From: Macrostomum lignano
Taxonomy: Eukaryota
Assembly (NCBI GenBank): GCA_002269645.1
Contig: NIVC01001174.1
Span: 62,001-126,000, forward strand
Direction of reading: 5' to 3'
Length of the DNA: 64,000 bases
Position 1 is the first letter of the stretch. Every line of letters begins with the position of its first letter. The notes under the pieces are model-generated. The model searched no databases and was not told the DNA's origin. It saw nothing but the letters and a program-made list of their open reading frames with translations. Both the position numbers and the translations under genes were made by a program. Below are positions 1 through 45,305 of the stretch, one piece after another.

Positions 1-512
1 GGATCCATGTTTACCCAAGAAACTGTTATGCATCCGTGTTTACCCAAGAAACTGTTATGCATCCGTGTTTAACCAAGAAACTGTTATGCATCCGTGTTTA
101 GCCAAGAAACTGTTATGCATCCGTGTTTACCCAAAAAAACTGTTATGTATCCGTGTTTACCCAAGAACTGCTATGTATCCGTGTTTACCCAAGAACTGCT
201 ATGTATCCGTGTTTAATTAAGAAACTGTTATGCATCCGTGTTTAATTAAGAAACTGCTATGTATCCGTGTTTAATTAAGAAACTGCTATGTATCCGTGTT
301 TAATTAAGAAACTGCTATGTATCCGTGTTTAATTAAGAAACTGCTATGTATCCGTGTTTAATTAAGAAACTGTTATGCATCCGTGTTTAATTAAGAAACT
401 GTTATGCATCCGTGTTTAATTAAGAAACTGTTATGCATCCGTGTTTAATTAAGAAACTGGTATGTATCCGTAATCAGTGTTATTATTACAAAAACTGGTA
501 TGCATCCGTGTT
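1..512. repeat. 30-bp tandem minisatellite (~16 units, runs off the window start)
   Basis: The unit atccgtgttt(accc/aatt)aagaaactg(t/c)tatg(c/t) repeats head to tail and decays after ~470. Confidence 0.95.
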
Positions 513-2036
513 TACTAAAAGAAGATTTTCACTATGTCATCATGTCTTTGCGCTTAACCGAGAAACAATAAATTTTTTACTCTAGAAAAGCTAACTCTGA
601 CACTGTTTGAGATCCCTTAATAAGCAGATAAAATCTTCACGATATGTTCAGGGCTTATTGATGCAACTATAATCGAAACAATTATTTTTAGGTGCTGGAG
701 GACTTAATTGTTTGCGTTGTTTACTGTAGTCTATAATGAAGTCAACCAAAATGATTTAATTATGGATGCCGCATACCAGAAAAAATGGTATAGGTTAACG
801 ACGCTAGTAAAGACGCGTAACGGAGAAAACCTTTTTCAACCAAAGGAAAAAAACAAAAAAACAAAACAAATGATGCATTCGATCGGTCAGAAAAAAAACA
901 CCAAAATATTGATTAACACTAACTATATGAATGAAAATCATGGTAGGTGTCATGTACCCACATGTAGCTAGCACGGAAAAGCGCTGGAAATGTACTCAGA
1001 AGCCTAAGATGACAACAATCGAGACGTTAGCAATCAAGAAAACAAGCTGGGTGGATCATGAGTAGTCATTTGCGTCATAAACGAAGAAAAGTTGGCTGTT
1101 GGAGTTGCTAAAATGTCAATAAAAGTCTAGATCAAGTGGATTCAGTACTTTCTATTCGGCTAGAATTTCTTGAGTAGACACGATCAAGCAAGTCGGATAA
1201 AAACAACGATAAAATTTATTGAAGTATTTGTGCGAAAAAAGAGTTAAAGTTTGAAACTACTAGCTGCTAAAAAATGAATAGTCAAAAGTAAAATCGATCT
1301 GTTAAGGCGATGAAGTTTAACAGTAAGATTTAATCGGATTGAGGTTTCAATTAAAATAGCGCAGGTATACAACCATAAAAATATGAGAAAATCAAGAGTT
1401 AATATACTAGCTTTAATTTTCTAGGAAAATAAAACAAAAAGAAGGTTCATGGAAATAAACAGACGAGCGCCACAATCCGAAATCGTTTGAATTTCGCAGA
1501 ACGAAATTCTAGAAGAACGAAACAACCGGAGACCGACAAGCAGGCAAAATTCTGAGGCTATATCGATTGTTCTTTCCCGGATTTTTTGTTAGAGTTTTGT
1601 TTACGAGTATGGTAAATCCGTTCGCAATACACAACTGTGCAATGCATTTTGCGTTGGGAAAAAGCTACGAGTATTTGACAAAGAGTTCAAAGGTTCTGTC
1701 AAATTAAAGATTAAGATACTGAGAACCTCCTATCCTTCGGATGCTCTTGACTCCATTGTAATCCGCACGACTTGCGAGTGTAGCGTCCAATTCTACTTTT
1801 TCCATGGAAGGATACCAACGTCAGAATCGAGCTAGATTTACTTTGTAGAGGCTTTCAAATTTTTAGGTTTAAATATTTTGACAATAAAAAACATTGCTAC
1901 ACCAAAGCAAAAACAATATACAGTACAGAAAAAATGAAAAATTAAAATGAAATATGATAAATATGAAACCAGTTTCACTAAGGATATTGTTTAGCAGCAT
2001 TAATTCAGTCCCAGTAGTCGCTAACCGTTCGAGTTT

Positions 2037-3805
2037 TCACGGCTCAACAGCATGATTGTCATATTTCAGATTTTTTCCGATCAGCATGCCACCCCAGTAC
2101 CAGTAGATATGAGATTGGTCCAGGGCTCTTAACGCCTGTAAAAACTTATCCTTGATTTCTTGCAAAAATCTGCTGATTGTGAGATGACCGGTGTAATGAG
2201 CATTCTTGAGCACGAAGAACTCCACTCCGACTGTCTGAGGCGTAGCGCACTGGAATGCGTCCAGGCAGAGATGAATGCACAGAGCATTCTCTGGCGTAGT
2301 GGGGTCAGCTTTCAAAATATCTTCAGTGAAACTTGCGCTAAATCCGTTCGTCAAAGCTTTTGGATCGAAGCACTGAGTGCAAAGCTTTTGCATGTGCCGC
2401 AAAATCTCAGTTGAGGCTGTTAGCCTCTTGACGCCTGAATCAACTGCAGCATAGATGCTCACGTGAGAGGCTGCTGGCTGATTGTTGTAGCTAGCTGCAA
2501 ACGGCCATTCTATTTTTGGGTCGGAAAAAAGTTCATACTCAAACTTTGTCGCTACAGCGGGGTCATCCTCATTTTTACATGTACAGTTCAGCTCTAACGA
2601 CGCTTGAACAGAGCGGTCATATAAATATTTACCGGTATTTTTTGAATTCGGGATTCTCGTATCTGTCGTAGTTTGAGATAACAACAGTATGAAATTCTTC
2701 TCTCCTTTTTCGAATTTATTTATCCTGACGTCTGATGCAGATAATTTGCTTTGAGGGAAACCAATATCATTAACATCAAAGTCTCCCATGACGATAATCC
2801 ATTGGCTTCCTGCGTTGAATTTGCTTGTCAGAAAACTTTTGAGCTGCTTCCAAAAAGTGTCGTGCTCTAGTTTAACATTTTTCTGTCTTGGCGCGAACAC
2901 TTGCACTACGGTGCCGAAACCTTCCGTGCAGTTCAAATCCACACCAATGATTCTGCTCGATACGAAATCGAAATTAAGGACGGACTTCTGAAGCTCATCG
3001 CCTCTAACGACAATTGCCACTCCTCGGTAGGCCGTGTCGCTATTACCACAATGAGCGACTAAGTAGTCGCTAGAGTTTTGCTGTTCGGTAGTAGTTCCTT
3101 GATCCCTTGATTCATTGATTCGAAACATTCCTTCTCCCATCCAATGTGTCTGTCCGATGCCTAGGAGGTTCACTTTGTTATCTTCACTTTGCATCGCTTT
3201 CAAAAGTGCCGCAAAATTATGTTGGTTTTGGTTTTCTTTCTTATTGATTTCTGGCAAAATATTGCATCCATGTATTCCTCTATTGACTGTTGCAACTTGT
3301 ACTTGGCCTGAAATTAGATACAATTGATTTTGATTGAAATTCGATCCAGCGCACAAAATACGTTTATAATTAAGGGATTGACTTTTAACCCACTCTGAAG
3401 TGTCTTACTCTGAAAGAACATATCTAACCTAAATAAAGAATTAAAAAAATTCTGTTCTGCTTCTATTCACAAAAGTAGTTTATATCTTGGTCTTTTGCAT
3501 ACGAAAAGGGGGTTTTCATGCATCCCCCATCATCAAAATATATATTCAAAATATCTTATTTCTATAGAATTTCTATAGCAGTTTGCAACTGCAACTGCAA
3601 TCGAGCTACAATTCATTTTAGTGCATGTTAACTATGGTAGGCCAGGCTCTATCCAGTCTGATTTTCTAAGATCTGAGTGTCAGAACCTGCGAGCATATTT
3701 TGGGAACATTCACCACTGAACCAAATGCATTTCTGATGTACAACGTACGAGCCAATTTGCAGGTATTAACCAGTACTTACCTTTAACGGTTGAGGACGAG
3801 GCCAT
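2037..3805 (-). CDS. Spliced gene for a LINE(RTE)-type APE/EEP endonuclease-like protein (~431 aa), probably catalytically altered, no RT
   Basis: Exon 3805-3781 (ATG GCC TCG...AAA G|GTAAGT) and exon 3307-2037 (tttcag|GC CAA), a phase-1 match. EEP motifs: VATVN, LLGIGQTHW, GVAIVV, SSRII, VVQVFAP, IIVMGDFD. A further acceptor at 3847/3846 allows an extra upstream exon. Confidence 0.75.
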
Positions 3806-6089
3806 GACAGACAATTTTTGCGAGCCTAGCTGTTGTTGTTTTGCCGCTGAAAAGGCATGACGTGCAAAATCTATTTAGACTTTGAAATCCATTATTTTGT
3901 CGCTGATTCGTACTCAACAACGAAATCTCCATAACAGGCTCTACGCGTATGCTTGCTTTCTGGTAAAGGCTTTTCGGGATTAAAATTTTTGAAGCAAAAA
4001 TTGTAACCCTAACTTTAACTTCGAGTCGATGCGTTTCTACATAATCAAATAAGCTACTCGCATAGTACACTTGTACTATAGCAATTCGTATTCTAGCACT
4101 TCAAGCACTTCCAGATCCATAGTTAGTTTCAGCACTCTTTTTCTATTTTGTTGGTTTTGGGGTGCGGTCGTTAGGGTGAACGCTTCAACGCAAGGGTGGT
4201 TAATAATCTTAACTTTGATTGAATTCAATTTGTAGTACAAACAATTCAACTGAAAATCTTAGACTCAGCTGTAATAATCTAGATAGATATTCTTTATCAT
4301 TCGATCGAGTCAACGAGTACAAACTCTGTGAGATAATTCTCAAAGCAAATCGTAATTTTGAGAATACCACGACAAAAATGATTTGTGGCTGATAAATACT
4401 TACACAAAACGTCGAAGTAGAAGCTTTTGTTCAAATAAAGGCCGAGTCAGTCGGTCGCAATCGGTGGCAAACTGGCGAGCTCGGGAACTTTCAATGGAAT
4501 TAGTAGCGGGTGTCGTTTTGAAATACCAAAATGGGGTGAAGAGGGCTGACTCTGGCTTGTCTTTACTTAAAGCCTTTTGGGTTTAGTCAGAAAATCGATA
4601 CAACCTCTGCCAGCCGGGCAGGCAGACAGCATGCACAGATACGTGGGTGGAGAAGAAGTGGAAAAGTGGGTGGGGTATACATGATCGCCTTCCCTTTTTC
4701 GATCTTAAGCTCATTAGAGTACTCAGCAGAATTTTTTTTTCAATTTTTCTCTTTTTCAGTGTACACAAGTGTCCGGGACTGCAGTTGGGCAACTTGACCT
4801 GGGCGGTTGACAAACGGAGACGGCTGGCCGAAGAATTCTGAATGAGCCCGGCGCGGAGGCCGCTCCTGGGGAGCCCAACCCCGACTTGGCATGGCTACCG
4901 AGGGGTGGATGCATGTGGGCCAGCCCGCACAGAAGGACAATGAACTTGCCTTTGAAGTTGCCTTTCGCTGTCCGAAAAGCCGAATCAAAGTGCGACTTAA
5001 GAAGTAGAAGGGCGGGACACTTGCTTCTTAAAAAATGCAATAGGAACGGCTTGGTTATACACTGTAATACACTGTAGAGATAACAAGGCTGGTGAAGTTG
5101 AGGACTGCTAGCAAAAAATGCAGCTTAGAGTGTGCGGTCAGTCCAAAGGTCTCATTGCCAATGACTGAAAATCCTTAGCAGTCCCCTTCTGTTGTTGAGC
5201 AGTACTCGAGGCTTTATCTCTCTTTATTTCGAAAGTCGATTTTATGAAGAACAGGAATTACATGTAGAAACATTTTCAACTTTTTGTGTATTTACGAATT
5301 TTTTGCGTAATAGTCGTCTCAATATTCGTTCCAACCCGTGCTAATACTAAGGTACATGTATATGAACTAATTTTATATATCAAAGATATGATTAGTCAAA
5401 TCTTATTTAATGCTAGTATCCAAATTCTGAATGAAAACTTACATGTAGCTTCCAAATCGGTACAGAGGTTTGTAAAAGCTTCTGTCGGCACGTCGGAATG
5501 GTTTCGTGAGAAAAAAGACAACCGACTGCTTAAGCATGCCCCGCATTTACTCAGGACAGGCTCACCTACCTCGGCCCAAACCCGGACCTCTCCGACGTTT
5601 TCAGGCCCCCGCGAGAATCTCTGCCAGCTCGTCCGCTAGCTACCTAAGGGCTACCGGGCTAGCGACCATCCACCTCCTGGACTCTCCCGGAGGGGGACCG
5701 CGCTGCGGACACCGGCACCACCGCAGTGCGGTCCAGTGAATGCTACTTCAAGTGAAGGTAGCCAAAGCTTAAGGCAAATAAGTTTAAAATTTAATTCATA
5801 TATTTAGTCATTATAAGTAGTAGAATAAAAATTTTAATTTCAGGATCTATTTTAAAAAAAACAAAAAGTATAGCCATTAAATACTACGAGCATAGATTTT
5901 CAAATGAGACAAGCTCAAAAAGGATGCTTGAGTTCTTTTTCACAGCTTCTTGTCCTTAAAAAGTTGAATTAAAATAAAATTTGACACGATATGAGCGGAA
6001 AATTATTAAAAATTATAAAAATCTAATAATGAGATACTTAGAAGGCTTTTTATACTGTCTGCGTGCACAGTTTCAAGATCTAAAATGAG

Positions 6090-9000
6090 CTACTGCTTGG
6101 CAGTGGACATCTGCCGCTGAATCTCAGCCAGCCCTTTCATCAGTTCCTTCATCTGCTTTGCCAGCTTCTTCTGAGATTTCCGTTGTTTGCTCAGCTGCTT
6201 CTCAATTGCCGCCAGGTGGTCGCCTCCGTCGCCTCGCGACTGCGTCAACAGCTCCCGATGAAACTCCCGACGAAAATCCTTGAGCAGGGATCGATTCGAC
6301 TCAGCCAGGATGTTCTCGTTGTGCGCTTTGAGACCATCGTAGTCGCTTTGATGCTTCTCAAGTCCCTGCTGCAGGGTGGGCCGGCACAGTCTCAGCTGCA
6401 GAGCTTGGTAGATGAGGAACTGTCTGTAGTCCTCTGGGTAGCCTTCCATACAGTCTGTGCGCTGCCACCACTCCTGGTGCTGATAGGGACAGGGGGAATA
6501 TTTATGCATTGTTATTAATGGCTAAATAAATATTTGATATGCTGCTTTGCTGCCTCGATGGCTAAGAAAAATCCAGCAGCCAACAGACCAACAGACAGTG
6601 GCTCTCACCAACAGACAGTGGCACTCACCAACAGACAGTGGCTCTCACCAACAGACAGTGGCACTCACCAACAGACAGTGGCTCTCACCAACAGACAGTG
6701 GCACTCTCACCAACAGACAGTGGCTCTCACCAACAGACAGTGGCACTCTCACCAACAGACAGTGGCACTCTCACCTTCAGATAGTGGCACTGTCATCTTC
6801 AGATAGTGGCACTGTCACCTTCAGATAGTGGCACTGTCACCTTCAGATAGTGGCACTCTCACCTTTCAGATAGTGGCACTGTCACCTTCAGATAGTGGCA
6901 CTCACCAACAGACAGTGGCACTCACCAACAGACAGTGGCACTCACCAAGAGACAGTGGCACTCTCACCAACAGACAGTGGAACTCACCAAGAGACAGTGG
7001 CACTCACCAATAGACAGTGGCACTCTCACCAATAGACATTGGCACTCACCAACAGACAGTGGAACTCACCAAGAGACAGTGGCACTCACCAACAGACAGT
7101 GGAACTCACCAATAGACAGTGGCACTCACCAATAGACAGTGGCACTCACCAAGAGACAGTAGCACTCACCAACAGACAGTGGCACTCTCACCAACAGACA
7201 GTGGCACTCTCACCAACAGACAGTGGCACTCTCACCTTCAGATAGTGGCACTGTCATCTTCAGATAGTGGCACTGTCACCTTCAGATAGTGGCACTGTCA
7301 CCTTCAGATAGTGGCACTCTCACCTTCAGATAGTGGCACTCTCACCTTTCAGATAGTGGCACTGTCACCTTCAGATAGTGGCACTCACCAACAGACAGTG
7401 GCACTCACCAACAGACAGTGGCACTCACCAAGAGACAGTGGCACTCTCACCAACAGACAGTGGCACTCTCACCTTCAGATAGTGGCACTGTCATCTTCAG
7501 ATAGTGGCACTGTCACCTTCAGATAGTGGCACTGTCACCTTCAGATAGTGGCACTCTCACCTTTCAGATAGTGGCACTGTCACCTTCAGATAGTGGCACT
7601 CACCAACAGACAGTGGCACTCACCAATAGACAGTGGCACTCACCAATAGACAGTGGCACTCACCAAGAGACAGTAGCACTCACCAACAGACAGTGGCACT
7701 CACCAACAGACAGTGGCACTCACCAATAGACAGTGGCACTCACCAACAGGCATTGGCACTCACCAACAGACAGTGGCACTCACCAACAGACAGTGGCTCT
7801 CACCAACAGACAGTGGCACTCACCAATAGACAGTGGCACTCACCAATAGACAGTGGCACTCACCAACAGACAGTGGAACTCACCAAGAGACAGTGGCACT
7901 CACCAACAGACAGTGGAACTCACCAAGAGACAGTGGCACTCACCAACAGACAGTGGCACTCACCAACAGGCATTGGCACTCTCACCAACAGGCAGTGGCA
8001 CTCTCACCAACAGACAGTGGCACTCTCACCAAAGCGTAGGTACACCCAACCCGAGAGACAGGGGTGCAAACTAAAACAATAACGGCGTCCTTAGGATTCC
8101 GTGCTACTCTATCCATTACAAATTACTATGTACGTCCCTGCATAAAACGATCTCAGAAAAAGTTTAAGAAAACTTACATCTTCAGGGATTCGCTGGTCAG
8201 TGTTAGATTCCGTCTCCTCAGGAGTTGGGTGCACTTGACATCGAAGCTTTTTGCAGCAAGTATGCAAAGCTCGCAATGGTCGAATCAGAGCATAGTCCAG
8301 CAGGGAAAGCGGCAGGGGCAGCACGCTGACCATCCGGAACTGCTGCAGCATGTCGTAGCTGGTCTTGCGCCAGATGACCACCGTCTTGCTGGCCAGACGG
8401 GACACCGACAGGCTGAACAGGGCGATGAGGAGATTCCACATCACGATGTTCACCAGAAGAAGAAATACGAACAGCATGAATCCGTTGAAAGCCTCTCTGA
8501 GGTTCAATGGGAGTAGGGAAATGCATACTAGTCTTACAATAATTTTTGCAGTCTGAAAGCTTAAGAAAAGTTTTTGAGAAGTGTAAGAATTTCAATAAAA
8601 ATTACTAAGACTATTTGCCTTTGACCCTTTAGCCCCCCCACCCCCCTGCTTTAAATCAGTAACATTCTGATTCTAACAAACAGATAAAGTACCTGCCGTC
8701 AGGATGCACGCAGGTGAGGTTGGCGGTGTGTCCCGCAGCGATGGACGCCGTGGAGCAAGCTGTTAAGTCGGTCTTCTGGTACATCGTGTACGCAACAAAG
8801 CCGGGAAGGCTGAAAATCTCTCGTACGGTTGGCCAAACAGGTCGAGAAATGGTTGCTACGGGGCTTCCGTTAATGAAACTGAACGCCGGGTACAGCAACA
8901 CGAGAAAGAACACGCCAAATGAGACAATCATCACAGCCAGAATTAGCAGGAACGGCATTAGATCATCCAGCAATAGGCACTGCAGCATGGAGACCTTGGG

Positions 9001-12000
9001 CCCGATAGTTTTCTGGTAGGCCAGCAGCCGAAGCGTACGAAAGCCCCATAGTAGAAAGGAGGTCGCCAGAGTGACCTGGCAGCCATAGGACTCGCCCGAC
9101 ATGGTGGCGAACAGGTGAGCCTTCAATCCCAGGCCCACCCAAAGAAATAAAAGCGCCAATAGGTCGCAGTAGTTGTAGAAATCAGTTGCGTAGCGAGGCA
9201 CCTTGCGCTTAAGCCAGTACATTTCCACCGGCTGCCAACTTGAGGCCATGTCGGCGATCTCGTGAGCGGTGAGCGCGGCCGCAAACAGCCACATCAGCGT
9301 GTCCGGAGCAGCGTTGGAAAACGTGCGAGAGAAGTCGGTCACGTACCAGGCAAAGTAAGCCAGGAACACGAAGTACGAAATCACAAAAGAAAGGAACCTG
9401 TCTCGAGTGCTGCAACCTGATTGCGAGTTTATTTCGACATCTTCCCCAGTCTCCGAGGCCTGCTTCTGCCAAGGGAACGGCTCTCGTTGTTTCCAAAGCT
9501 CTTTAGTGAGCTTACTCAGACATTCGGAGGCAAAGAGAGCTTCACTGTCTAGCAGATTGATTAGCTCGAGCACAGTAAGATGCTGCAGCTCCGGTGATGT
9601 CTGCTCTGTGTCTGCACCAGACATCTGCAATTTGTAGTATGCGAATTTTGGTCCGTACTCGGAACGGCTGATCCCATTGTAGGTGACTGTTTTGACAAAG
9701 CGACCTGTCAAGTAGCGAAACACCAGCGGCTTCATGCTTGTGTCAGCATTCAAGTAAAGCTGATCCAGAAGGTTCACCAGTGTTGAAGTTACTCGGTCCA
9801 TCAGGCGACGCATCTGTTCATGCTTTCCTCGCCGTTGTTGTACCATTAGTCGAATGTTGATCAACACGCGGAGACAAGTAGGTACCATGTCGAACTGTGA
9901 CGTCAGAAGCAAGTCGTTTAGAAGGCCGTCCCTGCTGGTGAGAACGGCTACATCCGCAATGGTGACACCCGGTTGATCTAGGACTCTCGGGTCCAGATCC
10001 GGGAACCAGTCCTCGGTAGTGACCGACTTCTGCGATTGAAGCAGACGAGCCTGGATCAGCTGGCAGAAGCTGGCGTCTTGAATTTTATCCAGGTAGCCCA
10101 GCACCATCAGGCTGCGCAGCATGTCGGTGGAGTTCAGCTCAAAAGCACGAGCAAGCAGCATCAGCTGGGCCGTGTACCGCTGACCATCCACCTCAATTTC
10201 GCTGCTTCTGCCAGACAGTGCGGAGTCAACCGAGTATGAGTCCAGCAGACTCTGAGCCGCGTCTCGTTCGGGCAGTTGCAGAGCTCGTTTCGCTGGGTCC
10301 ACCAACCGTAGAACGTCCGCCAGATAGGTTTCGGAGTTCGAATCCCCCGTCGCAACGACACTCAGCAGAGCTTCAAAACGACCCTTAAACAAAATTTTAA
10401 AACTCAAGTTCAAGTTATTATTCCTTACGCTAGTGCTCTATAAATTTATTTTTGTTTAAGTCGGCTAGTTATACTAGTACCCTTTATTGGTTTGCTTTTT
10501 TCGTACATGCGCATAAGTCGACTCTACTAGACTCCTCAATAGACTGCCAGAACTTCAGGACCTTCAAAAACGATAAAAACAAGGCTTTCTCGTATACAGT
10601 TTGGGTTTCAATTTTTAAGGTTTTCAGGTTTACGTGTGACGTTGCTAGTTTAAGTGGTCCCGCAAAAGGGCCGTTGGACTATAGTTTCCCTTGCAATTTC
10701 TCATTTTAATTTCTCCAATAGTTTATTTTAACGTTTACTTATAGTAGCGTGCAAATAATTTGTATCAACTGCTAATTCACTGTGTATTTGGTAGGCCTTG
10801 CGCTCGTCTGTAAATTTTGGCACGATCGATAATTTCAAGTTCTCTCGCCAGCCAATGAAAACTCTCCGTGTTTGCGCTACCCCCTTTTGCGCTCTTTATT
10901 AACCCCCCGTCTGGCGGCGGGCTGGTTTTTCACTTTCGTTCTGCCGTCCCTTCGCGGCCTTGTTTTCCTTCTCTCTGTCTGGCTGCCTCGAGCCTCCTTA
11001 TCTCACGCCACGGCTGACGCCAACCTCGCCACTGCTCATCTGCCTGCCTACTGCGTCTCACTGCCTTCACTGTGCTCATTGCCATTGCTCATCACGTTAC
11101 GTCGCCATTGCATCATTCGTCTGCCACTTGACTTCATATCCAATTTATCTTCAAAGAAACCATTGTTGCAGCCGCCAGTGCCCAGAAAGCTATAGTTTGT
11201 TTATTAACAGTAATAACCAAGCCTAATATTGATACTACCAATAAAACCAACTACGGCAGTTCCTGCCTTTATCGCCAAGTGCTCCGCTACAAAATCCGCT
11301 TTACAAGAGTTGACTTCAACTTATTTTGGGACTAAAACGGCCCTTTTAAGGGTCATAGTCATAGCTAACTACGCCAACATCGTGACATACGAGTCTGACT
11401 CTTGCGCCACGACTCCTTGTTCGATTCCGGCCAAATTCATTAGGGGACTGCGCTCGAAAATTGATCGAGGGGTGCCGTGTTATTTACAAGTATGAGGGGC
11501 CAATCCCCCCCCCCAAGACACAGAGTGTACATACCTGACGACTAGAAAGGCTGTGCCACTGTACACCCTGTGTGAGCGAGTTTATGAGTGCGTGCTTGCG
11601 TCAAGTATCTGCGCGCTTGTGGGATGATGTCGCCGAAAGCATGGAACAAGGATGCCCCACAACCATTCTTATAACATTATTGGTCATTTTAATGCGTCCA
11701 ACTCTCGGTCCGAATTCTCCCAGATCGAAAACTGGGGGCTACAACCCAGGTCACGGTGTTCGCAAGCCATTGTACGTATCCGTGTGTGTGTGTCTGTGTG
11801 TGTGTGTGTGTGTCTGTGTGTGTTTGCGCACGGGGCATTTGTTGGGCCATCCGCGTACAACGGGACCCGCACTGTTGGGCCAAAAAAAATGTTGGGACCA
11901 CAGATACTATAATAACTAGATAGGCCACTTAGGCAAATGTCCTTGGTTATTTGTTTTTCTACTTTCAGTTCAGTAGCAAGTAAAGAATTCATAAGCTATA

Positions 12001-15000
12001 TTATATAAAACGACAGTGGGGGGCTTACGAGTGGAGCATGCAGACGTAAACAACTTAATGAGTTCAGCTGATTGTACATTGACTTAATGCCACTAAAATG
12101 TACGAGTATATAGCAGTTGGACGAGAGAGCGCTTGGGGAGGAAATAAAAAGAGGTGGGGGTTAACTGTACAGGGTTATATCTATATAGGCGCGCGGAGTT
12201 GGAGTGGGGAGGGTTATAAGGGTCGCTACGTGAGCCAATAAGAAGTAAGGAATTAAGAATTAAGATAGGATCGCAACAGTCTAGCCCACCCACAGTTAAC
12301 CCACCCACAGAGCCCACCACAGATGCTATAAAACAGACTAGATTTCGCTAACACAATTAATAAGACAAGCTCTGTTCATTTTCTCGACTCGAAGTGCCTG
12401 CCTTTATTAATATAAGATATTGTATAGATTTCTTCAATAAAATAAGATTCATTAAGATAAAATTGATTTGCTGACTATGCTAAATAGTCGGCTTTGCTGC
12501 GCTTCTGGCTGTACGAGTTCCGTTACATCGCCAGTTAAAGACGGAATTCCGATTCGCTTTCATCGCTTTCCAAACGACGACAATGTGGCAAAACGCTGGC
12601 AGCAAATCTTAGAGCTCAACTTCATGGATCTCAATGAAATAAGAAGAAAATGCCTAAGAATATGCAGTAAGCATTTTACAGACTCTGCCTATAATTGTGA
12701 GCTTCAACGACATGACCAAACTTCTCGCCTGCGATGGAACGCTTTGCCAGACAAGGAGCTAGTAATGCCTCGCCTTGTTCGAGAAGACCTGGAACCATCT
12801 GTTGTGAGAACGGATGAGGAGGCGGATAATATGTACCCGCCCGAACTTCAGCGATTTGACTGCATTTCGACAAGTGCCGAGAAACCATTACAATGGGAGC
12901 AAAGGTCGACAAAATCTGCTTCGTCCATCATTTTCCCGAAAAGATTGCAGCTATCCGATGTCCCGGTTCAGCAGAGGAAAAAATCCTACATGGATTGCAT
13001 CTACCGACAGCGCGTAACCATCAAGCGACTTCAAGACCAGATCGCCAAGGCAAAAGCAACAAAATTCAAAAGTGCGACAATGAGTCGAGTGATTCAGAGC
13101 AGCATCAAGCAGCAGTTTGTTGATTCCCGTGGAATGCGATGGTCAAAGAAAAGTATTTCCGAATCTATCCAGCTGCACCACAAGAGCCCAGCTGCCTACC
13201 GAATGCTGCGCAACAAGTGGAATTTTCCACTTCCATCCGAGTCATCGCTGAAGCGGCGAACCCGGCAGTTCTTTTCATCCCCTGGTGTCTGCCAAAAAAC
13301 GATCAAGCTGTTGCATGAAAAGCTTGCTAATGACCCCGAGCCACAGCGACTAGCAACTCTCTGCTTGGATGGCATGAGTTTATCAGCCAGCATCCGCTAC
13401 GACCATCATGGTGACCGAGTCGTAGGCTATGATGAACACTCTGCTGAGGACCTTGAGCAAAATCTTCAGAGACCCGTAAACGAAGCAGTTGTTGCTGTTC
13501 TCCGTGGAATCTGGAGCAACTGGAAGCAACCAATTGCATACTATCAAGTACATAGAACCCTCGGTCAGCTTCGATTTAAGTCTGCGATAGACGAGTGCCT
13601 TCGCGCTGCCCATGAAGCTGGAGTTCGGGTTGTCGCACTGGTTGTTGACCAAGAAACTACACAATGGGCCTACCTCAGCAAACTGGTGAGTTCAGTACTT
13701 TAATGATATAATCCCTTATAAATATTAAAGCATAGAGGAAATAATTCTCAAGTTTGGAAATATTAAAAAAATTATTTCGCACTAAAAATTATATTGCTAT
13801 TGTTTCGAGATTTAAAACTTCAAAATAAAAAAATCAATGCTTAATTTGTGCCAGTAAACGTTTTGATTACTTTAAGCCTTGCAACTTTTTATTTGTTTAG
13901 GTAAATCCTGCGGCTCCATTTCTAAACCATCCTGTGACGCAAAAGCCCATATTTGTGATTATCGATGTCCCGCACTGCCTAAAGAATGCGCGCAATGCCC
14001 TCATGAAGAACAACATCATTTTCGATGGAGACAAGCAAGCAAGATGGCAAGACCTAGTCGACTTCTACGAAAGGGACAGCAGCCGATCGCTTAGACTGGC
14101 GAGTCGGCTGAGCGATGCGCACTTCAACCTTCAATTGGGCCAGAAAATGAAGGTCTCCCTAGCCGCTCAGATCTTTAGTCACTCGGTTGCCAGCGGAATC
14201 AAGACACTAGTGCATCATCAAGAACTGCCTATCGATGCCTTGCAGACAGCAGATTTTGTGCAGAGAGTCAATGATGCATTCGACTTGTTGAATTCAACGC
14301 ACATTTTCGACAAAGGATTTAAGCAGCCGATCACGCGAAATTCGCTTGCAGAGAAGATTGACGAGTTGCGCAGCGTCGAAGCCTTCATCAGAAGCTGGCA
14401 GTTCCTTCCTAGCAGCGGAAAGTCGCTAAAGGCGACTATGAAATTCAAAGAAGCATTGATTCTGTCGACTTCTGCAATACGACAGCTCAGCACAGCGTTG
14501 ATTCAAGATGAGCACTACGAGTTCGTGTGCACGCGAAGACTAACACAGGATCACGTTGAGGTGAGTTACCTTGATACTCGTACTTTAAATCAAACATTTT
14601 ACAAATGTAAAAATAGTGTAATCACAGGTGCAGAGAGCAATAGTACTTAGCTGAAATATGTACTTCTAATATACCATATTGATGCACGCACAGAGTCAGA
14701 TGACTCATCAGTCACAGAATCAGATGACTCAAGTCACTGAATCAAATTCAATGAGATGCCACTGCTCAAGGGGGAATCAATGAGGACTCACTGACTGACT
14801 GACTGACTGACTGACTGACTGACTGACTGACTGACTGACTGACTGACTGACTGACTGACTGACTGACTGACTGACTGACTGACTGACTGACTGACTGACT
14901 GACTGACTGACTGACTGACTGACTGACTGACTGACTGACTGACTGACTGACTGACTGACTGACTGACTGACTGACTGACTGACTGACTGACTGACTGACT

Positions 15001-18000
15001 GACTGACTGACTGACTGACTGACTGACTATCTAAAGTTGTAAATTTATTTAAAGTAAAATGCATGTATAAACTTGAATTACAGAATCTGTTCTGCATCAT
15101 CCGTGGCCGCAATGGCTTCAACGAAAAGCCTGAGATTGCAGCGTTTCTTGGGGCACTGCGATCTGTAGCTGCCAGTGGCCTCTCCCAGCCAGATTCTGCG
15201 GCCAGAAACTGCGAAGACGACGGCTGTGTAGCTGCAGTCACAGCAGACTGTGCAGCTGTTGAACTCAGCACGACCAGCACGTCTGCCGCGAGTGATTCAA
15301 AGGCTGATGATCGGGGTGATGCGACTATTTCCAAAATATTGATACAACAAGAGCAGCCGGCTCATGATTCAATTCTAGAAGAAGCGACCGAGTATGTGGG
15401 CGGCTTTGTGCTCAATAAGAGTGGCGTCCTGGAATGCCAGAGCTGCAAGTTGGTTTTGACTGCTACGAATCCTACTGGAGTGCATCTACGGCATAAGACG
15501 CTGTCTCACGCGGTCTGTGGCCTAAAACTGCCTTCGCCAACTGCACTGCAAAGCTTTAACAAAATGGAAGCCATCTTCAGCGCTCAATCAGCAGCCTTCA
15601 TTGTGCAGCCGAAAGTTGCATTCCGAGTAAAACAAATATTTGTATCATCTGGAATTTCCTTCCCAGCTTGTGAAACGCATTTCGAACAAGTGCAAGACCG
15701 TTTATTTAAAGCATTTTTGCGTCTGCGTTTACACCATTGGTGCCGATGTAGGATGCGCGCGGATGTCCATTCTAAGTACTCTGCATTGCGAAAAGTCAAG
15801 AAATTTAACTAGATATTTGCATTAACAATACTTTTTACATCGATGGTTTGCTGCTATTCCGGAATTTAGTTGGTTCTATATTTTTCTGACAAAATTCGTC
15901 TTGAAGAGAATTTTCGGCGCTTTCTATAGCATTTTTATTTTTTTGCCAGCGTCTATTTTGTACTTATTATGGTTTTTATCATCTAAGTATGCATTAAAAT
16001 GTATGTATTAAAACGTATATATTAAAGTGAATTGCTCATTTTCATACATCTGCTACTGTTTGCTGTAATTTCTGTTTGTGCTATGTATTCTCCTCACGAT
16101 ACTATCGCAAATATATCATACTCATCCTCCTAAAAAGGATAAAAAATATCTTTATCGATTTTTCCTTACCAAAATTACACATTTTATGGAAAAAAATCGA
16201 AAAATGCCTATATTTCTACTGAACTGAAAGTAGAATGTTAGCGTATGTGCTGAGTGGCCTATCTAGTTATTATAGTATCTGTGGTTGGGACTGTCCCATC
16301 AAGTCCGTCCAACACTTCCAAAAAACTTACAATAGCAGCTCAAAAAAATACTCATTGGATTCAGCTCGACAGCCTCTTTTTGATGGTGCAACTCATTTTT
16401 AATAATTTTACTTTCTGAGTCCATAATTAAGCAAAAACTGGCGTCCCAATAATGAAAAATGATACAAAATTCGACCAAATCACTATTGGGACACTGAAAT
16501 GGCTAATCTGCTCCCGCATATTTTTATTGGTTTTTTCTCATATTTTTACTAATAGTAGATTTCAAGCGCATTCATTTGCTGCAGTCTTTGTTTCAAGACT
16601 TATATACATAGCATACATTAAATACATACATAGCAAAACATAGCAAAATACTTTTAAGGGTATTTTATTGTCAAAGGATGGTTCTGGATGGAGATAAACC
16701 TAAAGAAATGACAAGGGCTTACATGTACTTTTGACTGTGATGGGCATCAGTACTCTATACGAACTAAATTGTTAGGACAGTGTTGCAGTGTTGAATACAA
16801 CAGCCCACTCTTGTTAGGACTCATGCTATTGACTGCTGCGCGCATTCGATATTCTATAAATTGTTGGGACTGTGTGCTAGAGTGTCGTTTACAAAAGCCC
16901 ACTCATATTAGGACTTACCCCGTACATGTTAGGACTAAGCCCTACCCCCCTGTGTACATGGCTCCAATTTACCAGAGTCCCCTTGCTAGTTAAGTGTACA
17001 TTTATTTTTTGGTCTATTATTGACGCCACCCCGCAAACGTACAGTAAACAAAATTGGCATGTACTCGCTATGCTGAAATCAATGGTCAACTCTGCCTCTG
17101 CCATGGCACCCGAGTCACCATGGTATGGAAAGGAACAGCATGGAATGGCACAGCGAGAAACATGTAAGTGGTATTAAAAAACTTTGTCGGAAACAAGAAG
17201 CATTTATATTTAAATGCTATAAAAAATACTGCTCCTGCTAAGCAGTACCTACCTTTACTTTAGGTATATCACCTTTGATCAACTGCCATGTGGCGCAATT
17301 GCCAAAGGATCCGTCGACTTTAACCGGTAGGCTGTAAAAGCTTTGAGTAAAACTTGACATTTCGTCTGAATCCATTAATATTCAATAGCCTACGTGTCCA
17401 ACCACAAATATTATAAGTTTTGTACTTTTAACTCTCAGATTGGGTCTTAGCAGATTCTATAGCTATGCATGCAAGGGCCCCTCAGAGGAGATACTTAAAC
17501 ACTGCAGTGCATTTTTCCTAGCAATTATTGGGACACGAAGTGTTGGGCCACTGTGTGTGTGTGTGTCTAGTTTTTTCCGCATTTGTTAAGTCACCTAAAG
17601 AACTCAATTAATAAAGGGCTCCAGAACAAATTGATGGGCAAACGGATGACACACTGCACAGAGACTTGTTGGGACATATTAAAAACAGCTTATTTTAGAA
17701 TGGGTACACTTTACTAAAGTAGAATGCTCCTACAGAAAGCTGCAAGCAAACTAGCATCTTCTGGAGCTGACATGCAGAGAAGAATGATTTTGTCGTCCTT
17801 GAAATCACTAAATAGATATGCGAAATCGATCTTTTGCTAATCCCACCACAGGTTCCAGTGAAAAGAAGAAACGAAACCCATTGACTAAATTGGCAGTCGA
17901 CTCAATCGATGCCGACTGCAACGGACCTGTCAGCTTCGAACTCAGGAGAGCAGCTAATTTATAATCTGCAAGCGTAATGCTGGATGCCAGAGTGCTCTAA

Positions 18001-18501
18001 TAACGAGACTCCTGTTTTCTCACTCGACCGGAATTTGTTGTTCAATCTGCTTAACTAATCTCTGCGTTTCAGTTTTTCAGTCTCACTGTCAATTTTAGGT
18101 TTTTTCCTAAGCGCAAGTGTAATTGAATTTTTTATTCATATTAGTCAGGCATATTGCGTACAGCATTATAGCGTATTAGTAAAGGTAAAGGTAAATAGAC
18201 TGCTTGTAACTAGTTTTTCCTTCATGTGGATTGGCTTTAACGAAGCTTTTTGTATTTCAATTCGCTGGACTGAGGACAATATAGTTACACGATGTTACGC
18301 TATTACTTCACTTTCAATAGATCATACTATTAGTATCGGACGTGCTTTTTTATTTCAATGTATGCTTTTTTTCATCATTTAAATGCTAAAAATACTTAAT
18401 AGGTCATTGCACTGTGTGTATGTTTGTGGTTTCGTGTGTCAAAAAAAATTGCAAAATAAGTGCCCACCATTGTATACCGTACCAACAAGTGCCCGGTGCG
18501 T

Positions 18502-18543
<42 letters not shown>

Positions 18544-21500
18544 ATGGCAGGTTTTTACAGCCTAGGGTTTTGCTTTCCTAGTTCTCCCACTAAATTCCTC
18601 ACCTTGTTGTAGGCCAGGTCCGCGCAGGTCTGGCCAGCCTCGGTTTCTTCGCCGAGCTGCAGCCCAGCGCCAGTCAGGTAGCGAATGTTGGCCGAGTGCC
18701 CAGCCTCGCAGGCCAGGTGCAGGCAGGTGGCGCCCTTCAGCGGCCCGCCGGTCGGCATCCTGGCGGACATCTCCATTTTTTCTCCCGCTATCTTCAGCAG
18801 GGAATCCTGCAGCTTGGCCAGGTCGTATTTCGATGCGAACAGGTGAATGGCGTGCAAACCCTCGGAGTTGGTCAGCAACGGTCTGTACTTCTCAGGCTGG
18901 CCGGCCATTTTCTGAAGAATGCCGAGCAGCATTGAGTCGCTGATTTCAGAGGCCATCAGACAGTTGCGCTTGTCGGAGTTCTCGGCAGTCAACGATATGC
19001 CGCCCTCCGTTTGAAAGCGTTCAAATTCAACAAAGAAGTTTTCGACGTCAAAGTCTCGCGACCAGAATTCCTGGCGCACTTTGAGCAGAGCGTGCAGCAG
19101 AGTGTTGCCTTTCTGATCCATGCAAGCCTGCCGTTTTGGCTTTATAAAGTCGGCAGACAAGAAGTCGAAGTTCTTCAGCAGGCAGGCTATGAATACCGGG
19201 TTGCGACCCTGGCGAGATAAGGCGAAATCAAAATAGGCTACTGCAAGTAGTACTGAATGAAAATTACGCTTGTAGTTGTAATTTTTGCTACCAGAGTGGC
19301 TAAATCTAGTCTTATTGTAAATAAAATATTTTTTCGCTGCACGAAAATGTGCGCGATTGTTCAGACCCATTGCATCCACTGCACTAGCTCGCCGCTACGT
19401 TTTCCGAAAATCAAAACCTCAATAGTTCCACCTGAGGAATCCGGCAGGGTCTGACAGTAGATACGAGCTACAACGGGACTTATATTTTCTTGATGAAAGG
19501 TTCAAAATACATGTAAGAATATTTATAAGTCAGTAGAGTTGACGAGAAGATGCTACGAGCGTACTTGCATTAGTCAGCTTCTTTGCTTGTGGTTTGAGTC
19601 TCCGTTAGTAAATTGCCTAGTTTTTAGCAGTTTCTATAATCATTAACTCGGTCCCCAGGATTTGTTTAGATGCAGATATTGCAGGATTTCCGCCATAGTA
19701 GCCTCATTAGGAGCCCATAAGGGGTTTTTTCAGACATTAACGTTTACCTTCTGGTCTCCTAAACAAATAGTAGGTAAGAACAGATGTCTATGTAAGCTAA
19801 AAATGAAGATCAAAGCCTCACCTCATGATCAATGGATCCCTCTATAGCCGCTGACGGAGTGTAAAACCCGAGCGCATCAGCAGCAGCTCGGAAGTACATC
19901 TCTCCGTAGTATCGGTTCGCGGCGCAGTAGTGCAGACAGTTCCGACCTTCGTCGTCTGCCGAGCTGAGCGTCACGCGCAAACTGCTCGCCTCCTCGCTTA
20001 GCAACCAGAGAAAGGCGCTCTCCTGACCCTCTGGCAGACGTGTCTCGTTGGCAGCCGCGCAGTGAACGGCGGTGCGACCTTCGGCATCGCGCCAAGTGAA
20101 GCACTCGTCGCCAAGACGGTTTCGAATGGACCGAAGGCAATCCGCACCCTGTTATTCATAATGATAATAATAACTGATTGCATCTGCCTCAATTGAGCCG
20201 GATGTGCAACCGACAGCTCAGCCGCAACTATTGCGCGACGCATTTGAAGGCTGCGTACGGCTGTTCAGTCCAAGGACTGGGGGGTCGCCACACACCCTCA
20301 ATTGCCCCAGCTAATGCTGGCACCCATTTTACAGCTGGGTGCACTGAAGCAATGCAGAGTTATGTGTCTTGCTCAAGAACACAAATTGTTTCGAGTGCGA
20401 TTGGGAATCGAACCCCCGACCTTTCAGTTGTTATTCCGACGCTCTAACGACTGGGTGGCTACCTCCTCAGTTGTTCAACAAGTTCGTAGCAAAGATTCAT
20501 TTGAATAAAACTGTATCAGGAATGCTTTTGCCTGCCTGTCGCCATCAGTCAGCCTGCCGCCTTATACTACAAAAAAGGTGCTTCTAAGGTGACCTGTTGA
20601 ATACGTAGATATAGAAAGAGTTCTACGATCGATAAAGTTTAATTTAAGGTATAATTGACTCCGCATCACTGATTGCTCATGGAAAAGCGGTTTTTTCTGG
20701 CAATAAAGCAGTAAAATTCTGCTAACGAGTGGGTAAAAATGTCAATAAATATAGTCGAAATTCACCTGAAACCAAGCCGCCAGATGAATTGGGGAATTTT
20801 TCTTCTCGTCCCTCTCTTTGAGACAGTCAGGAGTCAGCTGCTTGACGAACCAGTCCAGCGCGTCAGGAGAGTTTCGATTTTTGGCCGCGTACATCACGGC
20901 AGTCCGGCCGAGGAAGCCCTTTCGCAGGAAGCCGTCCAGTTTGCCCAGTTGCTTCTTCGCCCTCTCCAGCAGCTGCACGCTTCGCTTCTCGGCGCACGCG
21001 TGCAAAGCGTTCGTGTTGCTGATGTTGCCCAAGATGAAGATCTCCTTTGGCAGGTTGTTCAGGTGGAGCATCCATTTGAATGTCGTCTCGTTTGGATTGT
21101 GCGCTGCGTAATACGCCACGGATCGTTTCGAGTCGTCTAGAGCTTTGAAGCAGTCTTCTCCACAGAGTCTCTTCATCAACTGCATCGCGCTGCTGTCCAG
21201 CTTCCAGGCGGCGAGATGAACCGGTGTAGCACCCGATCGAGTCCTGCTAGTCATGTACTCAACTCCGAATGAATCCGCCAGTATTTCGAATGTCTTGCAC
21301 ACAACAGCTGGGTCCTTTGTGCTATCGACTGCCGCCATGTGAGCAAGATTCCAGCCCTGCTCAGGGTCAGTCTCATCAGCTAAAGTGCGTTCTCCTTGTC
21401 CTTTTCCTTTTCGTACTTTGCTGTGATTCTTTACTGAAACGCCTGTTCTGGGCGGCAGCAGCCGTTCCAGTGCGTTGTTGTCCCCATCGGCAATGCATTG

Positions 21501-36162: not shown

Positions 36163-39100
36163 TTAAACTTCGGTAACGACGCACTGCACAACCGCCTGTG
36201 CAGCCTGCACGGCCAGTACCGCCTTCTCCCGATTCGAACTCTCCGACAGATCCAACGCCCGACCGTTGCGCTCGTCCACGAAGGCGCTCGCCAGCTGTGA
36301 GACGTGATCCAACACGGTCTGCGTCAGATCGGTGTCCGAAATGCAGCACAGATGCTGGCTCAGCTGCTGTTGACGATCCACTGCTTTACCCTGCTTTGTC
36401 AGCAACGCCTTCAGCGCCTTCTCCGCTGCCTGCCAGCTGATGAAGCTGGCCCATTCGAACTCGCCCGCTTCGATCCATCGCTCTGCTGAGCGCAGTTTTG
36501 TCTCTGCAGTTTCCAGGCACTTTTCTGCACTGTCGGCAGAAGCTCGGCCAGCACTGGAGCCTTCGGAGAAGTGCAGCCCGCCGCCTGCGACGCCTCCGCC
36601 GTGGCGTCTCAACCAACTGATGACGACCTCTTCAGCAGTGAATATGAGGCGACACCTGGCTACTCGCTCAGCCTGCTTCTGCCAATCGTTAATGAACTCA
36701 TGGAATTGGTGAGTCCAGTTGTGCTCAGCAGCGAATGATTTTATCTGTTCAAATGAATTAGCAGTACTTGAGTAGTGAGTCAGAGTCCGTTGCAGTACTT
36801 GACGCTGCTTGTCGGTCGGCAGCGAAGCTGCACTGCTCAACAGATGGTCAATGGACGCTCTGACATCAGTGTTTCCATGTGGAACCGATGAATAAACTGA
36901 AGCTGGTTGGTTCTCGAGTAAGAACAGCTCAGCTGTCGTGGCTTTGACGTGAGCACTTTCGCCAGCGTCAATGATGTACTCACTGGTCCATGGATTCTCG
37001 ACTTCAACAGGGAGCTTCTCTAGCACTTTGGCGTACACAAAGCATCCGTACTTATCCTTGTAAGCCACAGTTTTGCTCACTAGGTCTATCGGCTTTGCTG
37101 GCAGATGCCTGAGCAGGCAGTTTTTAAGCTGTGGCAAAGCCTGGCCAATCAAGGAAGCGCCCATGGTACTTAGCTCCATGCTCTTCTGACTCTTCACTTT
37201 GTGCAGAGAAACTTTACGCTTTTCCAAAACTTTCAGCATACCTTCGGGACTGTCCATCAGAAGCACAATTGTCAAATGATTTCCATGCTCCGGTGATATT
37301 TTGAAGCCATTCTGTAAAACTTTCTGAACGATATCCACAAAGTCCATCTGCCAAAGCATTCCCTTACTACCGCTGAGGTGTTCAGGGATGGCTGCATGGC
37401 TCATAAGAATCTTCCGTCCTTGCAGCAGAAAGTTCTTGTCTTCAGCTGAGTCGCGTTGCTCGACACCGTCAAACTGCAGGCAGGTCCGCAGCTCCGACAG
37501 GCAGACAACCGAAAATCGGGACAGAAGAGAAGAGAGAGAAGCAAAAACTTCATCACCTTTGACGGATAAGTCTTTCGAATTGTGCAAAATGATGCTAGTG
37601 ATGCACTGGAGCAGCACTGGGTGCCTCAGCTTAGCTTGAAGATTGCATCGGGCTGCACAGTTTTCCCCAGCGCTGCACCGATCGCTGACCTCCGTCAGCA
37701 GCTTCTCGCTCACATTCTCGCTCAGTCCTTTGAGCCCCAAGTCGGCTGCGAGGCTGAAGTACAGCCTGCGCAAACTGTCACTACCCAGCTCGCAGAAGCT
37801 GAGATCGAGAAATTTGACACACTTAGATTCCGCTAGCCTCTTCTGGTAGCCGTCCGAGTCGTTGATTGTGAGCTTCTGGCAGTCCACCAGCTCGAACTCG
37901 GTATCTATTGCGTCCTGGAAGTCGTCAGGTAGCACCAGTTTAGTAGGTAGGAATAGCCTTTTTGTGGACTCAAATTTCAGCTTTCCGCCTTGTTCTAATA
38001 AACCGATCATTGTGGTCAGGCATCGGTGCACGGAAGTAAGCTGATTTTCAGTTAGATAATATTGCTGATGCTGTTCGTCGTGAATGAGCTCCAGGACCAG
38101 CCTCAGTTGCTCCAATGTTGCTGATTTGGTGGCGCCCAACTTAGTAAACAGATTTAAATGACATCTGAAATCACCTGGACAGACCTGGATGTACGGTGGC
38201 ACCGAGGTTTTTTCTTCGAATGTGATTCTGTTTGGGGTGACGAAGCACGGGTCCCATCTAGGGCCTGTGAAAATGCAAGGAATTTTTCTCAAACGTGCAA
38301 TCACATTTCCCATTTTGGCACTGTTCATCCTCGTCAGATGTTCATAAATAGAGCTCATGGTCTTGAGCCTTAAACTCGCAGCAGTGTCGTGCATTCTAGA
38401 TGAAGTGAATGCTTCGTTGGACAAAATGTTCTGCAAATGACGCTCAAAAGCCTCATCGGAAACAGTCTTCATGGACTTATTCAAGCAAGGTCCGCAGTCA
38501 AGACAAGCGTACGACTCAACAGTCCAACAAAGGTAACGTGAGCTAAATTTTACGCACTGGGAGGGACTTTTCATGCAAACAGCATCGCCTGGACAAAGAC
38601 TGTGTAGGTCCTTGTCGTCATTCGCTACTAAAAATGGAATCTGAGATAGTTTCTGGACAAATTTATCTGTTAGATGCGTCCGAAAGCCCACACTGTCGAT
38701 AAATTTCAGCAGCATTTTCGATCTGTTTTTAAGATCATCAGAAATGCCAACAGTCCCTTCCGTGCTGATGTCATTGGCAAACTTAATAACAGTATCAGCT
38801 GAGCACTCAGTAATTAAGCCAGCATGGAGCATCAGCTGTCTCCAACGGCCACACTGGAACCGCTCTGGAAGAAAGTTTTCTGAATCCAAAGTTTTTTCGA
38901 ATATAAATACCGTGTGATCATAAAACGCATTAACCCTCTTCCAGCCGCATTGTGTCGGAATGATACTTGCTTCCTGTAGAGAGCTTTCGAGTTTCCTTAA
39001 GTTTTGAGATTCATCTGATTTCATAAACGGAATTCGATCAAAGTTTCTGCTCATTTCGCAGAGTTTCTCTAAATGCTTCTCTCGAGTTGGGTCGGACAAT

Positions 39101-45042: not shown

Positions 45043-45122
45043 TTTGGAGGCCTGTGTGTAGGGTTTTGAGAGGCTTGAACTGTGATTGAAGTACATGAGA
45101 ATGCGTGACTTGCACGCATGCA

Positions 45123-45169
45123 TGACTGACTGACTGACTGACTGACTGACTGACTGACTGACTGACTGA
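45123..45169. repeat. (GACT)n microsatellite upstream of sacsin-1
   Basis: About 11 tgac units. Confidence 0.95.
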
Positions 45170-45305
45170 TAGAAAAAAATATGTTAAAAACAGCGGATAA
45201 CTTAGATCTTAAGTGGCATTTTTTAACTTTGATTTAAGCTTTGGACTACATGTTTAAGGCGCAAGGGTAAAAACTTTAAACAATGTTTATTTAGAACTGT
45301 ATTTG

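Follow-up and report, generated by a model that had tools for sequence, protein, structure and literature searches.

Host genes derived from the enzymatic part (ORF2) of long interspersed nuclear elements (LINEs) are very rare, and BCNTp97/CFDP2 of ruminants, whose function is still unknown, is the only one named in the review text consulted (PMC12129022). According to the same text, BCNTp97 carries an endonuclease (EN) domain from an RTE-1/BovB LINE, reported to be intact, fused to parts of the pre-existing host gene BCNT. A gene of the flatworm Macrostomum lignano resembles CFDP2 in having an RTE-type LINE EN without reverse transcriptase (RT) inside an intron-containing, apparently host gene. 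It was found in a 64,000-nucleotide stretch of contig NIVC01001174.1 (assembly GCA_002269645.1, positions 62,001 to 126,000 of the forward strand), hereafter the window, in whose coordinates all positions are given unless another contig is named. In contrast to CFDP2, no more than the first two-thirds of the EN can be recognised in the flatworm gene, the active site has substitutions at three positions, and the sequence to which the EN is joined is without known relatives; the two genes arose independently in unrelated animals. The parallel with CFDP2 drawn in a preliminary description of this DNA therefore holds for the origin of the domain, the nearest relatives being named CFDP2-like, but not for its state, since the EN of CFDP2/BCNTp97 is reported as intact (PMC12129022).

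The flatworm gene may also be compared with three other described systems. L1TD1 and further host genes or exons of LINE origin belong to a rare class in which part of a LINE protein has been co-opted into a host gene (PMC12129022), but these are derived from ORF1p, an RNA-binding protein, and not from the endonuclease. With the EN of LINE ORF2 itself (human L1 EN, PDB 1VYB/8SP7; PF03372/PF14529) the flatworm protein shares the fold over residues ~10-200 (Foldseek E=1.5e-7) and the motif order WN.., ..SETHW, GVAI, QVYAP, GDFN; it differs in lacking an RT, in the replacements E>Q, Y>F and N>D, in having no detectable IDY and SDH segments, and in being silent in Pfam. Pseudomonas Crc works with Hfq in translation-repression complexes and is not known to have nuclease activity. 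It is a precedent for a protein of the endonuclease/exonuclease/phosphatase (EEP) fold that binds rather than cuts, the fold having been put to non-nuclease use, and it is among the Foldseek matches of the flatworm protein (4jg3, 8bvm, 8bvj). However, Crc is a bacterial protein with a complete fold, does not descend from a transposon, and is related to the flatworm protein in fold only, not in sequence.

The gene lies on the minus strand. Its first exon (3805-3781, 25 nt) encodes MASSSTVK and the first base of the Gly9 codon, and is followed by a GTAAGT donor. A single phase 1 intron (3780-3308, 473 nt, GTAAGT...TTTCAG) separates it from the terminal exon (3307-2037, 1271 nt), which consists of 2 nt, 422 codons and a TGA stop codon (2039-2037). 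The coding sequence (CDS) totals 1296 nt, and the spliced product of 431 residues is 100% identical to GenBank PAA71308.1 (hypothetical protein BOX15_Mlig002176g1). The GenBank annotation was built on RNA-seq transcripts assembled in genome-guided mode with StringTie, TACO and the TBONE boundary pipeline (PMC5730564). Because the spliced translation equals PAA71308.1, the splice junction inferred from the sequence is the junction of the transcript-derived model, and the structure initially proposed from the letters alone, a small ATG exon spliced in phase 1 to a 422-codon exon with an uninterrupted frame, is that of the GenBank protein. The intron and the gene's own ATG exon constitute a host-type gene structure around coding sequence derived from a transposable element (TE), and transcription is indicated by the RNA-seq-built annotation.

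The remaining five frames of this 1.3 kb of DNA contain 16-34 stops each. Shuffled versions contained a mean of 26 stops, and 0/20000 shuffles stayed open, which excludes chance alone as the origin of the long open frame. At this locus lies a genuine protein-coding gene with one intron and low copy number, which is already annotated but uncharacterised.

Comparison of the protein with 1.84e9 representative proteins using phmmer gave 35 matches at E<=1e-3 (best E=5.6e-7), all confined to residues ~45-213. Each of the ten matches tested carries PF03372/PF14529 (Exo_endo_phos / Exo_endo_phos_2) and two continue into RVT_1, which identifies the matches as LINE EN or EN-RT proteins. Those with names are 'craniofacial development protein 2(-like)' from the insects Sitophilus, Solenopsis and Cacopsylla, a label in use for sequences resembling the EN of RTE/BovB-type elements; these names back the RTE-type assignment only indirectly. 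The LINE matches from environmental sources provide no information on taxonomy. Eight complete relatives were combined in a profile, which aligned with residues 50-187 (3185-2772, minus strand), the confidently homologous core, with 86 bits; as the relatives in the profile had been picked for similarity to the query, the valid statistics are the whole-library phmmer E-values. A profile search of a collection of 5.8e9 proteins (alignment A1) retrieved 6 proteins only, and the whole protein and its halves, used as queries against Pfam and PDB sequences, returned nothing relevant.

A structural model was obtained with AlphaFold2 (AF2) from an alignment of 38 sequences, the query and 37 LINE EN relatives. 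The predicted local distance difference test (pLDDT) score was ~90 for residues 10-200 and <50 for residues 208-331. The model depends on the LINE alignment. From the single sequence alone, AF2 gave a pLDDT of 31, which is of no use. A Foldseek search with the alignment-based model placed human L1 EN at the top (8sp7, 1vyb; E ~1.5e-7), followed by Exonuclease III, APE1, TDP2 and Crc. The template modelling (TM) score for L1 EN, 0.57-0.60 relative to the target, means that about two-thirds of the EEP fold is recognisable. The N-terminal strand of this fold is completed by the ATG exon together with the canonical intron. These comparisons show that residues ~10-213 descend from the EEP-fold endonuclease of an RTE-like non-LTR (long terminal repeat) retrotransposon; the apurinic-type endonuclease remnant, delimited by phmmer, AF2 and Foldseek, spans residues 10-213 (2694-3305, minus strand) and represents the first two-thirds of the fold. 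The RTE-type EN origin previously read from motifs is thus upheld by a remote but significant phmmer homology to LINE EN and by the CFDP2-like relatives.

The RT that accompanies the EN in LINEs is absent. Eight LINE relatives, of which five are full-length EN-RT proteins, were compared by tblastn with the window and its flanks of 10 kb in either direction; they matched the EN part alone, in agreement with the preliminary description, which had noted no RT downstream. Neither a LINE-type 3' end nor an RT remnant is present at the locus.

The catalytic columns were read in the 38-sequence alignment, with L1 residue numbers taken from a profile alignment to L1 EN and with N68, E96, Y171, D210 and N212 as the equivalent residues of APE1. 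Two of the five alignable positions are kept: N17 (L1 N14, APE1 N68; N in 23/26 relatives) and D184 in GDFD (L1 D145, APE1 D210; D in 33/33 relatives). The other three are replaced. The metal-binding Glu (L1 E43, APE1 E96), present in 29/31 relatives (alignments A1 and A2), is Q61 in the motif LGIGQTHW (codon 3150-3152, minus strand); the catalytic-site Tyr (L1 Y115, APE1 Y171), present in 36/37 relatives, is F146 in QVFAP (codon 2895-2897, minus strand); and the Asn of GDxN (L1 N147, APE1 N212), present in 31/33 relatives, is D186 in GDFD (codon 2775-2777, minus strand). All three are near-isosteric swaps, and the replacements E>Q, Y>F and N>D listed earlier were confirmed at Q61, F146 and D186 against the 37 relatives.

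The last third of the nuclease domain carries a further catalytic Asp (IDY) and an Asp-His pair (SDH). Ten relatives with intact motifs served to build a profile that starts at GDFN and ends beyond SDH. This profile found nothing in the flatworm protein, and the real sequence scored no better than shuffles; the lack of an IDY/SDH motif, remarked on before, is confirmed by this search. With catalytic residues replaced or missing, canonical EEP nuclease chemistry is implausible. As judged from sequence, it is well supported that the protein would be incapable of the canonical Mg2+-dependent phosphodiester cleavage of LINE and APE1 nucleases.

The assembly contains three annotated copies, PAA71308.1 in the window and PAA51016.1 and PAA62017.1 on two other contigs; the latter two are identical, and both differ from the window protein by S200P. 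The window copy and the other two show 14 differences in 3134 bp, distributed as 1/1296 in the CDS and 13/1838 in non-coding sequence (Fisher p=0.011, on small numbers). One sister contig (L001, 16062-18556) has the last 147 codons and the 3' flank in a second, local copy, in frame and with 91% amino-acid identity; this copy is absent from the window contig and, within 10 kb, from the other sister contig (L002). Positions 1-4631 of the window, which include the gene, are 99.6% identical to the sister contigs, as compared to 94-95.5% upstream, with a sharp switch at about 4617-4631. The switch points to a mosaic assembly or to recent exchange between homeologues, by gene conversion or recombination.

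We propose that a LINE EN was captured to form the N-terminal part of the protein, that the RT was lost and that the last third of the nuclease domain changed to the point of being no longer recognisable; the near-isosteric E>Q, Y>F and N>D swaps would disable the nuclease chemistry. If functional, the product would be a non-catalytic protein, composed of a nuclease-derived beta-sandwich remnant and a lineage-specific, probably helical C-terminal region, and the pseudo-nuclease may act as a binding or scaffold module. The description as a LINE-EN-derived, RT-less, probably catalytically dead host gene is supported by the EN homology, the replaced residues, the missing RT and the few syntenic copies. 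Maintenance of the coding capacity is suggested by a 431-codon frame that is intact despite divergence far from any LINE, and by the well-kept motifs of the EN core; the intact frame and these motifs are the strongest argument for maintenance, and kept coding capacity would make the gene an exapted TE fragment. On balance, we lean towards a real TE-derived host gene that encodes a non-catalytic protein, and its domestication under selection is plausible. The recruitment of a retroelement domain as a host gene, as first suggested, thus stands in part, namely in its LINE-EN origin, its lack of an RT, its intron and its few syntenic copies.

Several points weigh against a maintained host gene. 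The evidence for expression is the way in which the annotation was built, not junction-spanning reads themselves, and the identifiers Mlig002176 and Mlig002126 are absent from the papers searched and from the supplementary tables of three M. lignano papers. No orthologues in other species were found in protein collections or JGI metagenomes, and the Pfam EEP models gave no reportable score on the 431-residue protein, even at E<=10. The sole CDS difference between full copies is non-synonymous, and dN/dS for the partial duplicate is 0.64 (14 non-synonymous and 6 synonymous changes), which, on these small numbers, is compatible with relaxed constraint. Finally, that the protein binds rather than cuts, as had been proposed, is pure inference.

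A rival explanation is a transcribed but functionless relic, an old rearranged LINE fragment whose frame is open as its copies are young or gene-converted, and whose protein is unmade or inert. We regard this explanation as unlikely, though with a real chance of being correct. It would account for the failure to find orthologues or paralogues, for the dN/dS of the partial duplicate and the non-synonymous character of the only coding difference between full copies, and for the lack of the gene in the published expression tables searched; the 4.6-kb block around the gene, at 99.6% identity next to sequence at 94-95.5%, likewise hints at conversion or mosaicism over constraint. However, a fragment so diverged that a third of its domain can no longer be recognised would be expected to contain stops, as the other frames and the shuffles do, and the EN core retains its structural motif residues well, as the 86-bit match to the relatives' profile indicates. 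The conservative nature of the active-site swaps, and the canonical intron and ATG exon that supply the N-terminal strand of the fold, also speak against a relic and in favour of a host gene.

The three copies share their neighbours, an upstream ankyrin-repeat gene of the same strand and a downstream ankyrin/protein-kinase gene, and the flanks of the copies align over about 20 kb. The Mlig_3_7 assembly of the neopolyploid M. lignano is redundant (PMC5730564), and the common neighbours and aligned flanks fit such an assembly, not a dispersed repeat. No second copy of any part of window positions 500-4700 lies in the other 59 kb, and the GenBank and the older UniProt annotation sets, which are independent of each other, contain only this locus.

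These data bear on the possibility that the locus is one member of a non-autonomous or dead repeat family in M. lignano, uncatalogued and RT-less, whose other copies are not annotated as proteins. Such a family is favoured by the repeat-rich genome and by the additional partial copy on one contig, which comprises the last 147 codons and the 3' flank. This copy is, however, a local tandem segmental duplication and not a dispersed insertion, the three full copies share flanks and neighbour genes, neither the rest of the window nor the two annotation sets provide another locus, and the locus has no LINE-type 3' end or RT remnant. We consider a repeat family improbable.

Two tandem repeats lie close to the gene. 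A 29-bp satellite, ATCCGTGTTTAATTAAGAAACTGTTATGC, is present in 16 copies at window positions 3-471, some 1.5 kb beyond the stop codon of the gene, and forms far longer arrays on the sister contigs L001 and L002. A 20-bp repeat, ACCAACAGACAGTGGCACTC, is present in 69 copies at 6587-8025, within the span of the upstream ankyrin gene; the ACCAACAGACAGTGGCACTC repeat yields repetitive pseudo-ORFs in several frames ('QQTVALTNRQWHS...').

The remainder of the protein, residues 214-431 (2040-2693, minus strand), is a region without detectable homologue. Neither the collections of 1.84e9 and 5.8e9 proteins nor Pfam, the PDB or JGI metagenomes yielded relatives of residues ~214-431. Detectable homology ends at about residue 190-213, so the part without relatives comprises about 220-240 residues, and not the ~150 residues of unrelated sequence originally estimated. 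The region contains seven Cys residues (C250, C252, C318, C321, C352, C356 and C362) with the spacings CxC, CxxC and CxHxC, among which no recognised zinc-finger family was found. Helices are predicted at about 308-321, 333-341, 347-361 and 386-403 in both AF2 runs, with low confidence. Of the new C-terminal domain put forward in the preliminary description, the absence of detectable homologues was borne out; its status as a domain was not, the structure prediction being of low confidence.

Two possible origins of this region were considered, and neither received support. The MAFFT alignment sets 'AASH' (His290) under SDH and 'DDPAV' under IDYIL, as though residues 188-310 were a degenerate last third of the EN; the corresponding profile gave no match, the score was no better than for shuffles, and hhalign posteriors were near zero. 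It is highly improbable that the protein is a still active EEP enzyme, nuclease or phosphatase, with a remodelled site to which residues 190-305 supply catalytic residues such as His290 in 'AASH': N17 and D184 are kept, MAFFT offers the above pairings and residues 190-305 have about the right length for the missing third of the fold, but the MAFFT placement has no statistical support, substitutions have removed the metal-binding Glu, the Tyr and the GDxN Asn, and AF2 confidence is <50 over residues 208-331.

The second candidate was the linker that precedes the RT in LINEs. By eye, SIYAAVDSGVKRLTASTEILRHMQKLCTQCF resembles the pre-RT linker motif 'I.D.dG..iT...eI...W..Y...Ly', the pattern shared by the C-terminal part and the linker being 'I.D.G..(I/L)T...EI...(W/M)..(Y/L)C..(L/C)(Y/F)', and a BLASTP alignment to the Sitophilus relative extends to residue 344. 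The pre-RT linker profile scored -0.8 on the C-terminal part, with 872/5000 shuffles at least as good, hhalign gave E=0.3-0.7 and Smith-Waterman comparison gave z<=1.9. A linker origin is an unsupported lead.

A more specific form of the host-gene interpretation is that the gene encodes a selected, lineage-specific pseudo-nuclease, in which a dead LINE EN joined to a novel helical, Cys-containing domain would bind nucleic acid at LINE target-like sites or act as a dominant-negative inhibitor of RTE-type retrotransposition. The model for an inhibitor of this kind is provided by truncated transposase or gag/env-derived restriction factors. We consider it a long shot; if correct, the flatworm protein would be the first endonuclease-derived anti-LINE factor.

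An alternative model of the same locus exists in UniProt. A0A1I8HCE9 is an older prediction of 259 residues, with two extra predicted introns, and is named 'Mediator of RNA polymerase II transcription subunit 20'. The Med20 family in Pfam gave no match at E<=10, and no Mediator chains were found at E<=10 in PDB sequence searches with the whole protein, A0A1I8HCE9 or the C-terminal 147 residues as queries. A Med20 identity of the product was accordingly rejected, as it has neither Pfam nor PDB similarity behind it. The GenBank entry carries no annotation of the LINE origin and its UniProt sibling is misnamed as Mediator, so that correction of the two entries would be a small but real gain in annotation.

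As a host gene from the enzymatic part of a LINE, the flatworm gene would constitute a second case, independent of CFDP2, in a tractable model with transgenesis and RNA interference. Its apparently disabled chemistry may give an experimental handle on the uses of a LINE endonuclease fold that no longer cuts.

Further features were noted elsewhere in the window. A minus-strand open frame of 593 codons (8659-10437) lies within the span of the upstream gene, apparently outside the annotated protein; Pfam domains were not found in it, and the 5.8e9 proteins contain no homologue at E<=1e-20. A segment of about 8 kb (10634-18597) is present in the window and largely missing from the two sister contigs, and is probably an insertion polymorphism between homeologues or haplotypes. 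An open reading frame on the plus strand of this segment (12456-13700) encodes THAP and TNP-like RNase H N-terminal domains, which point to a P-element/THAP9-like DNA transposon. At 36166-45183 and 56310-63998, the minus strand has a tandem of two very long open frames, which encode Sacsin (SACS) domains and C-terminal HEPN domains and represent a duplicated sacsin-like gene pair.

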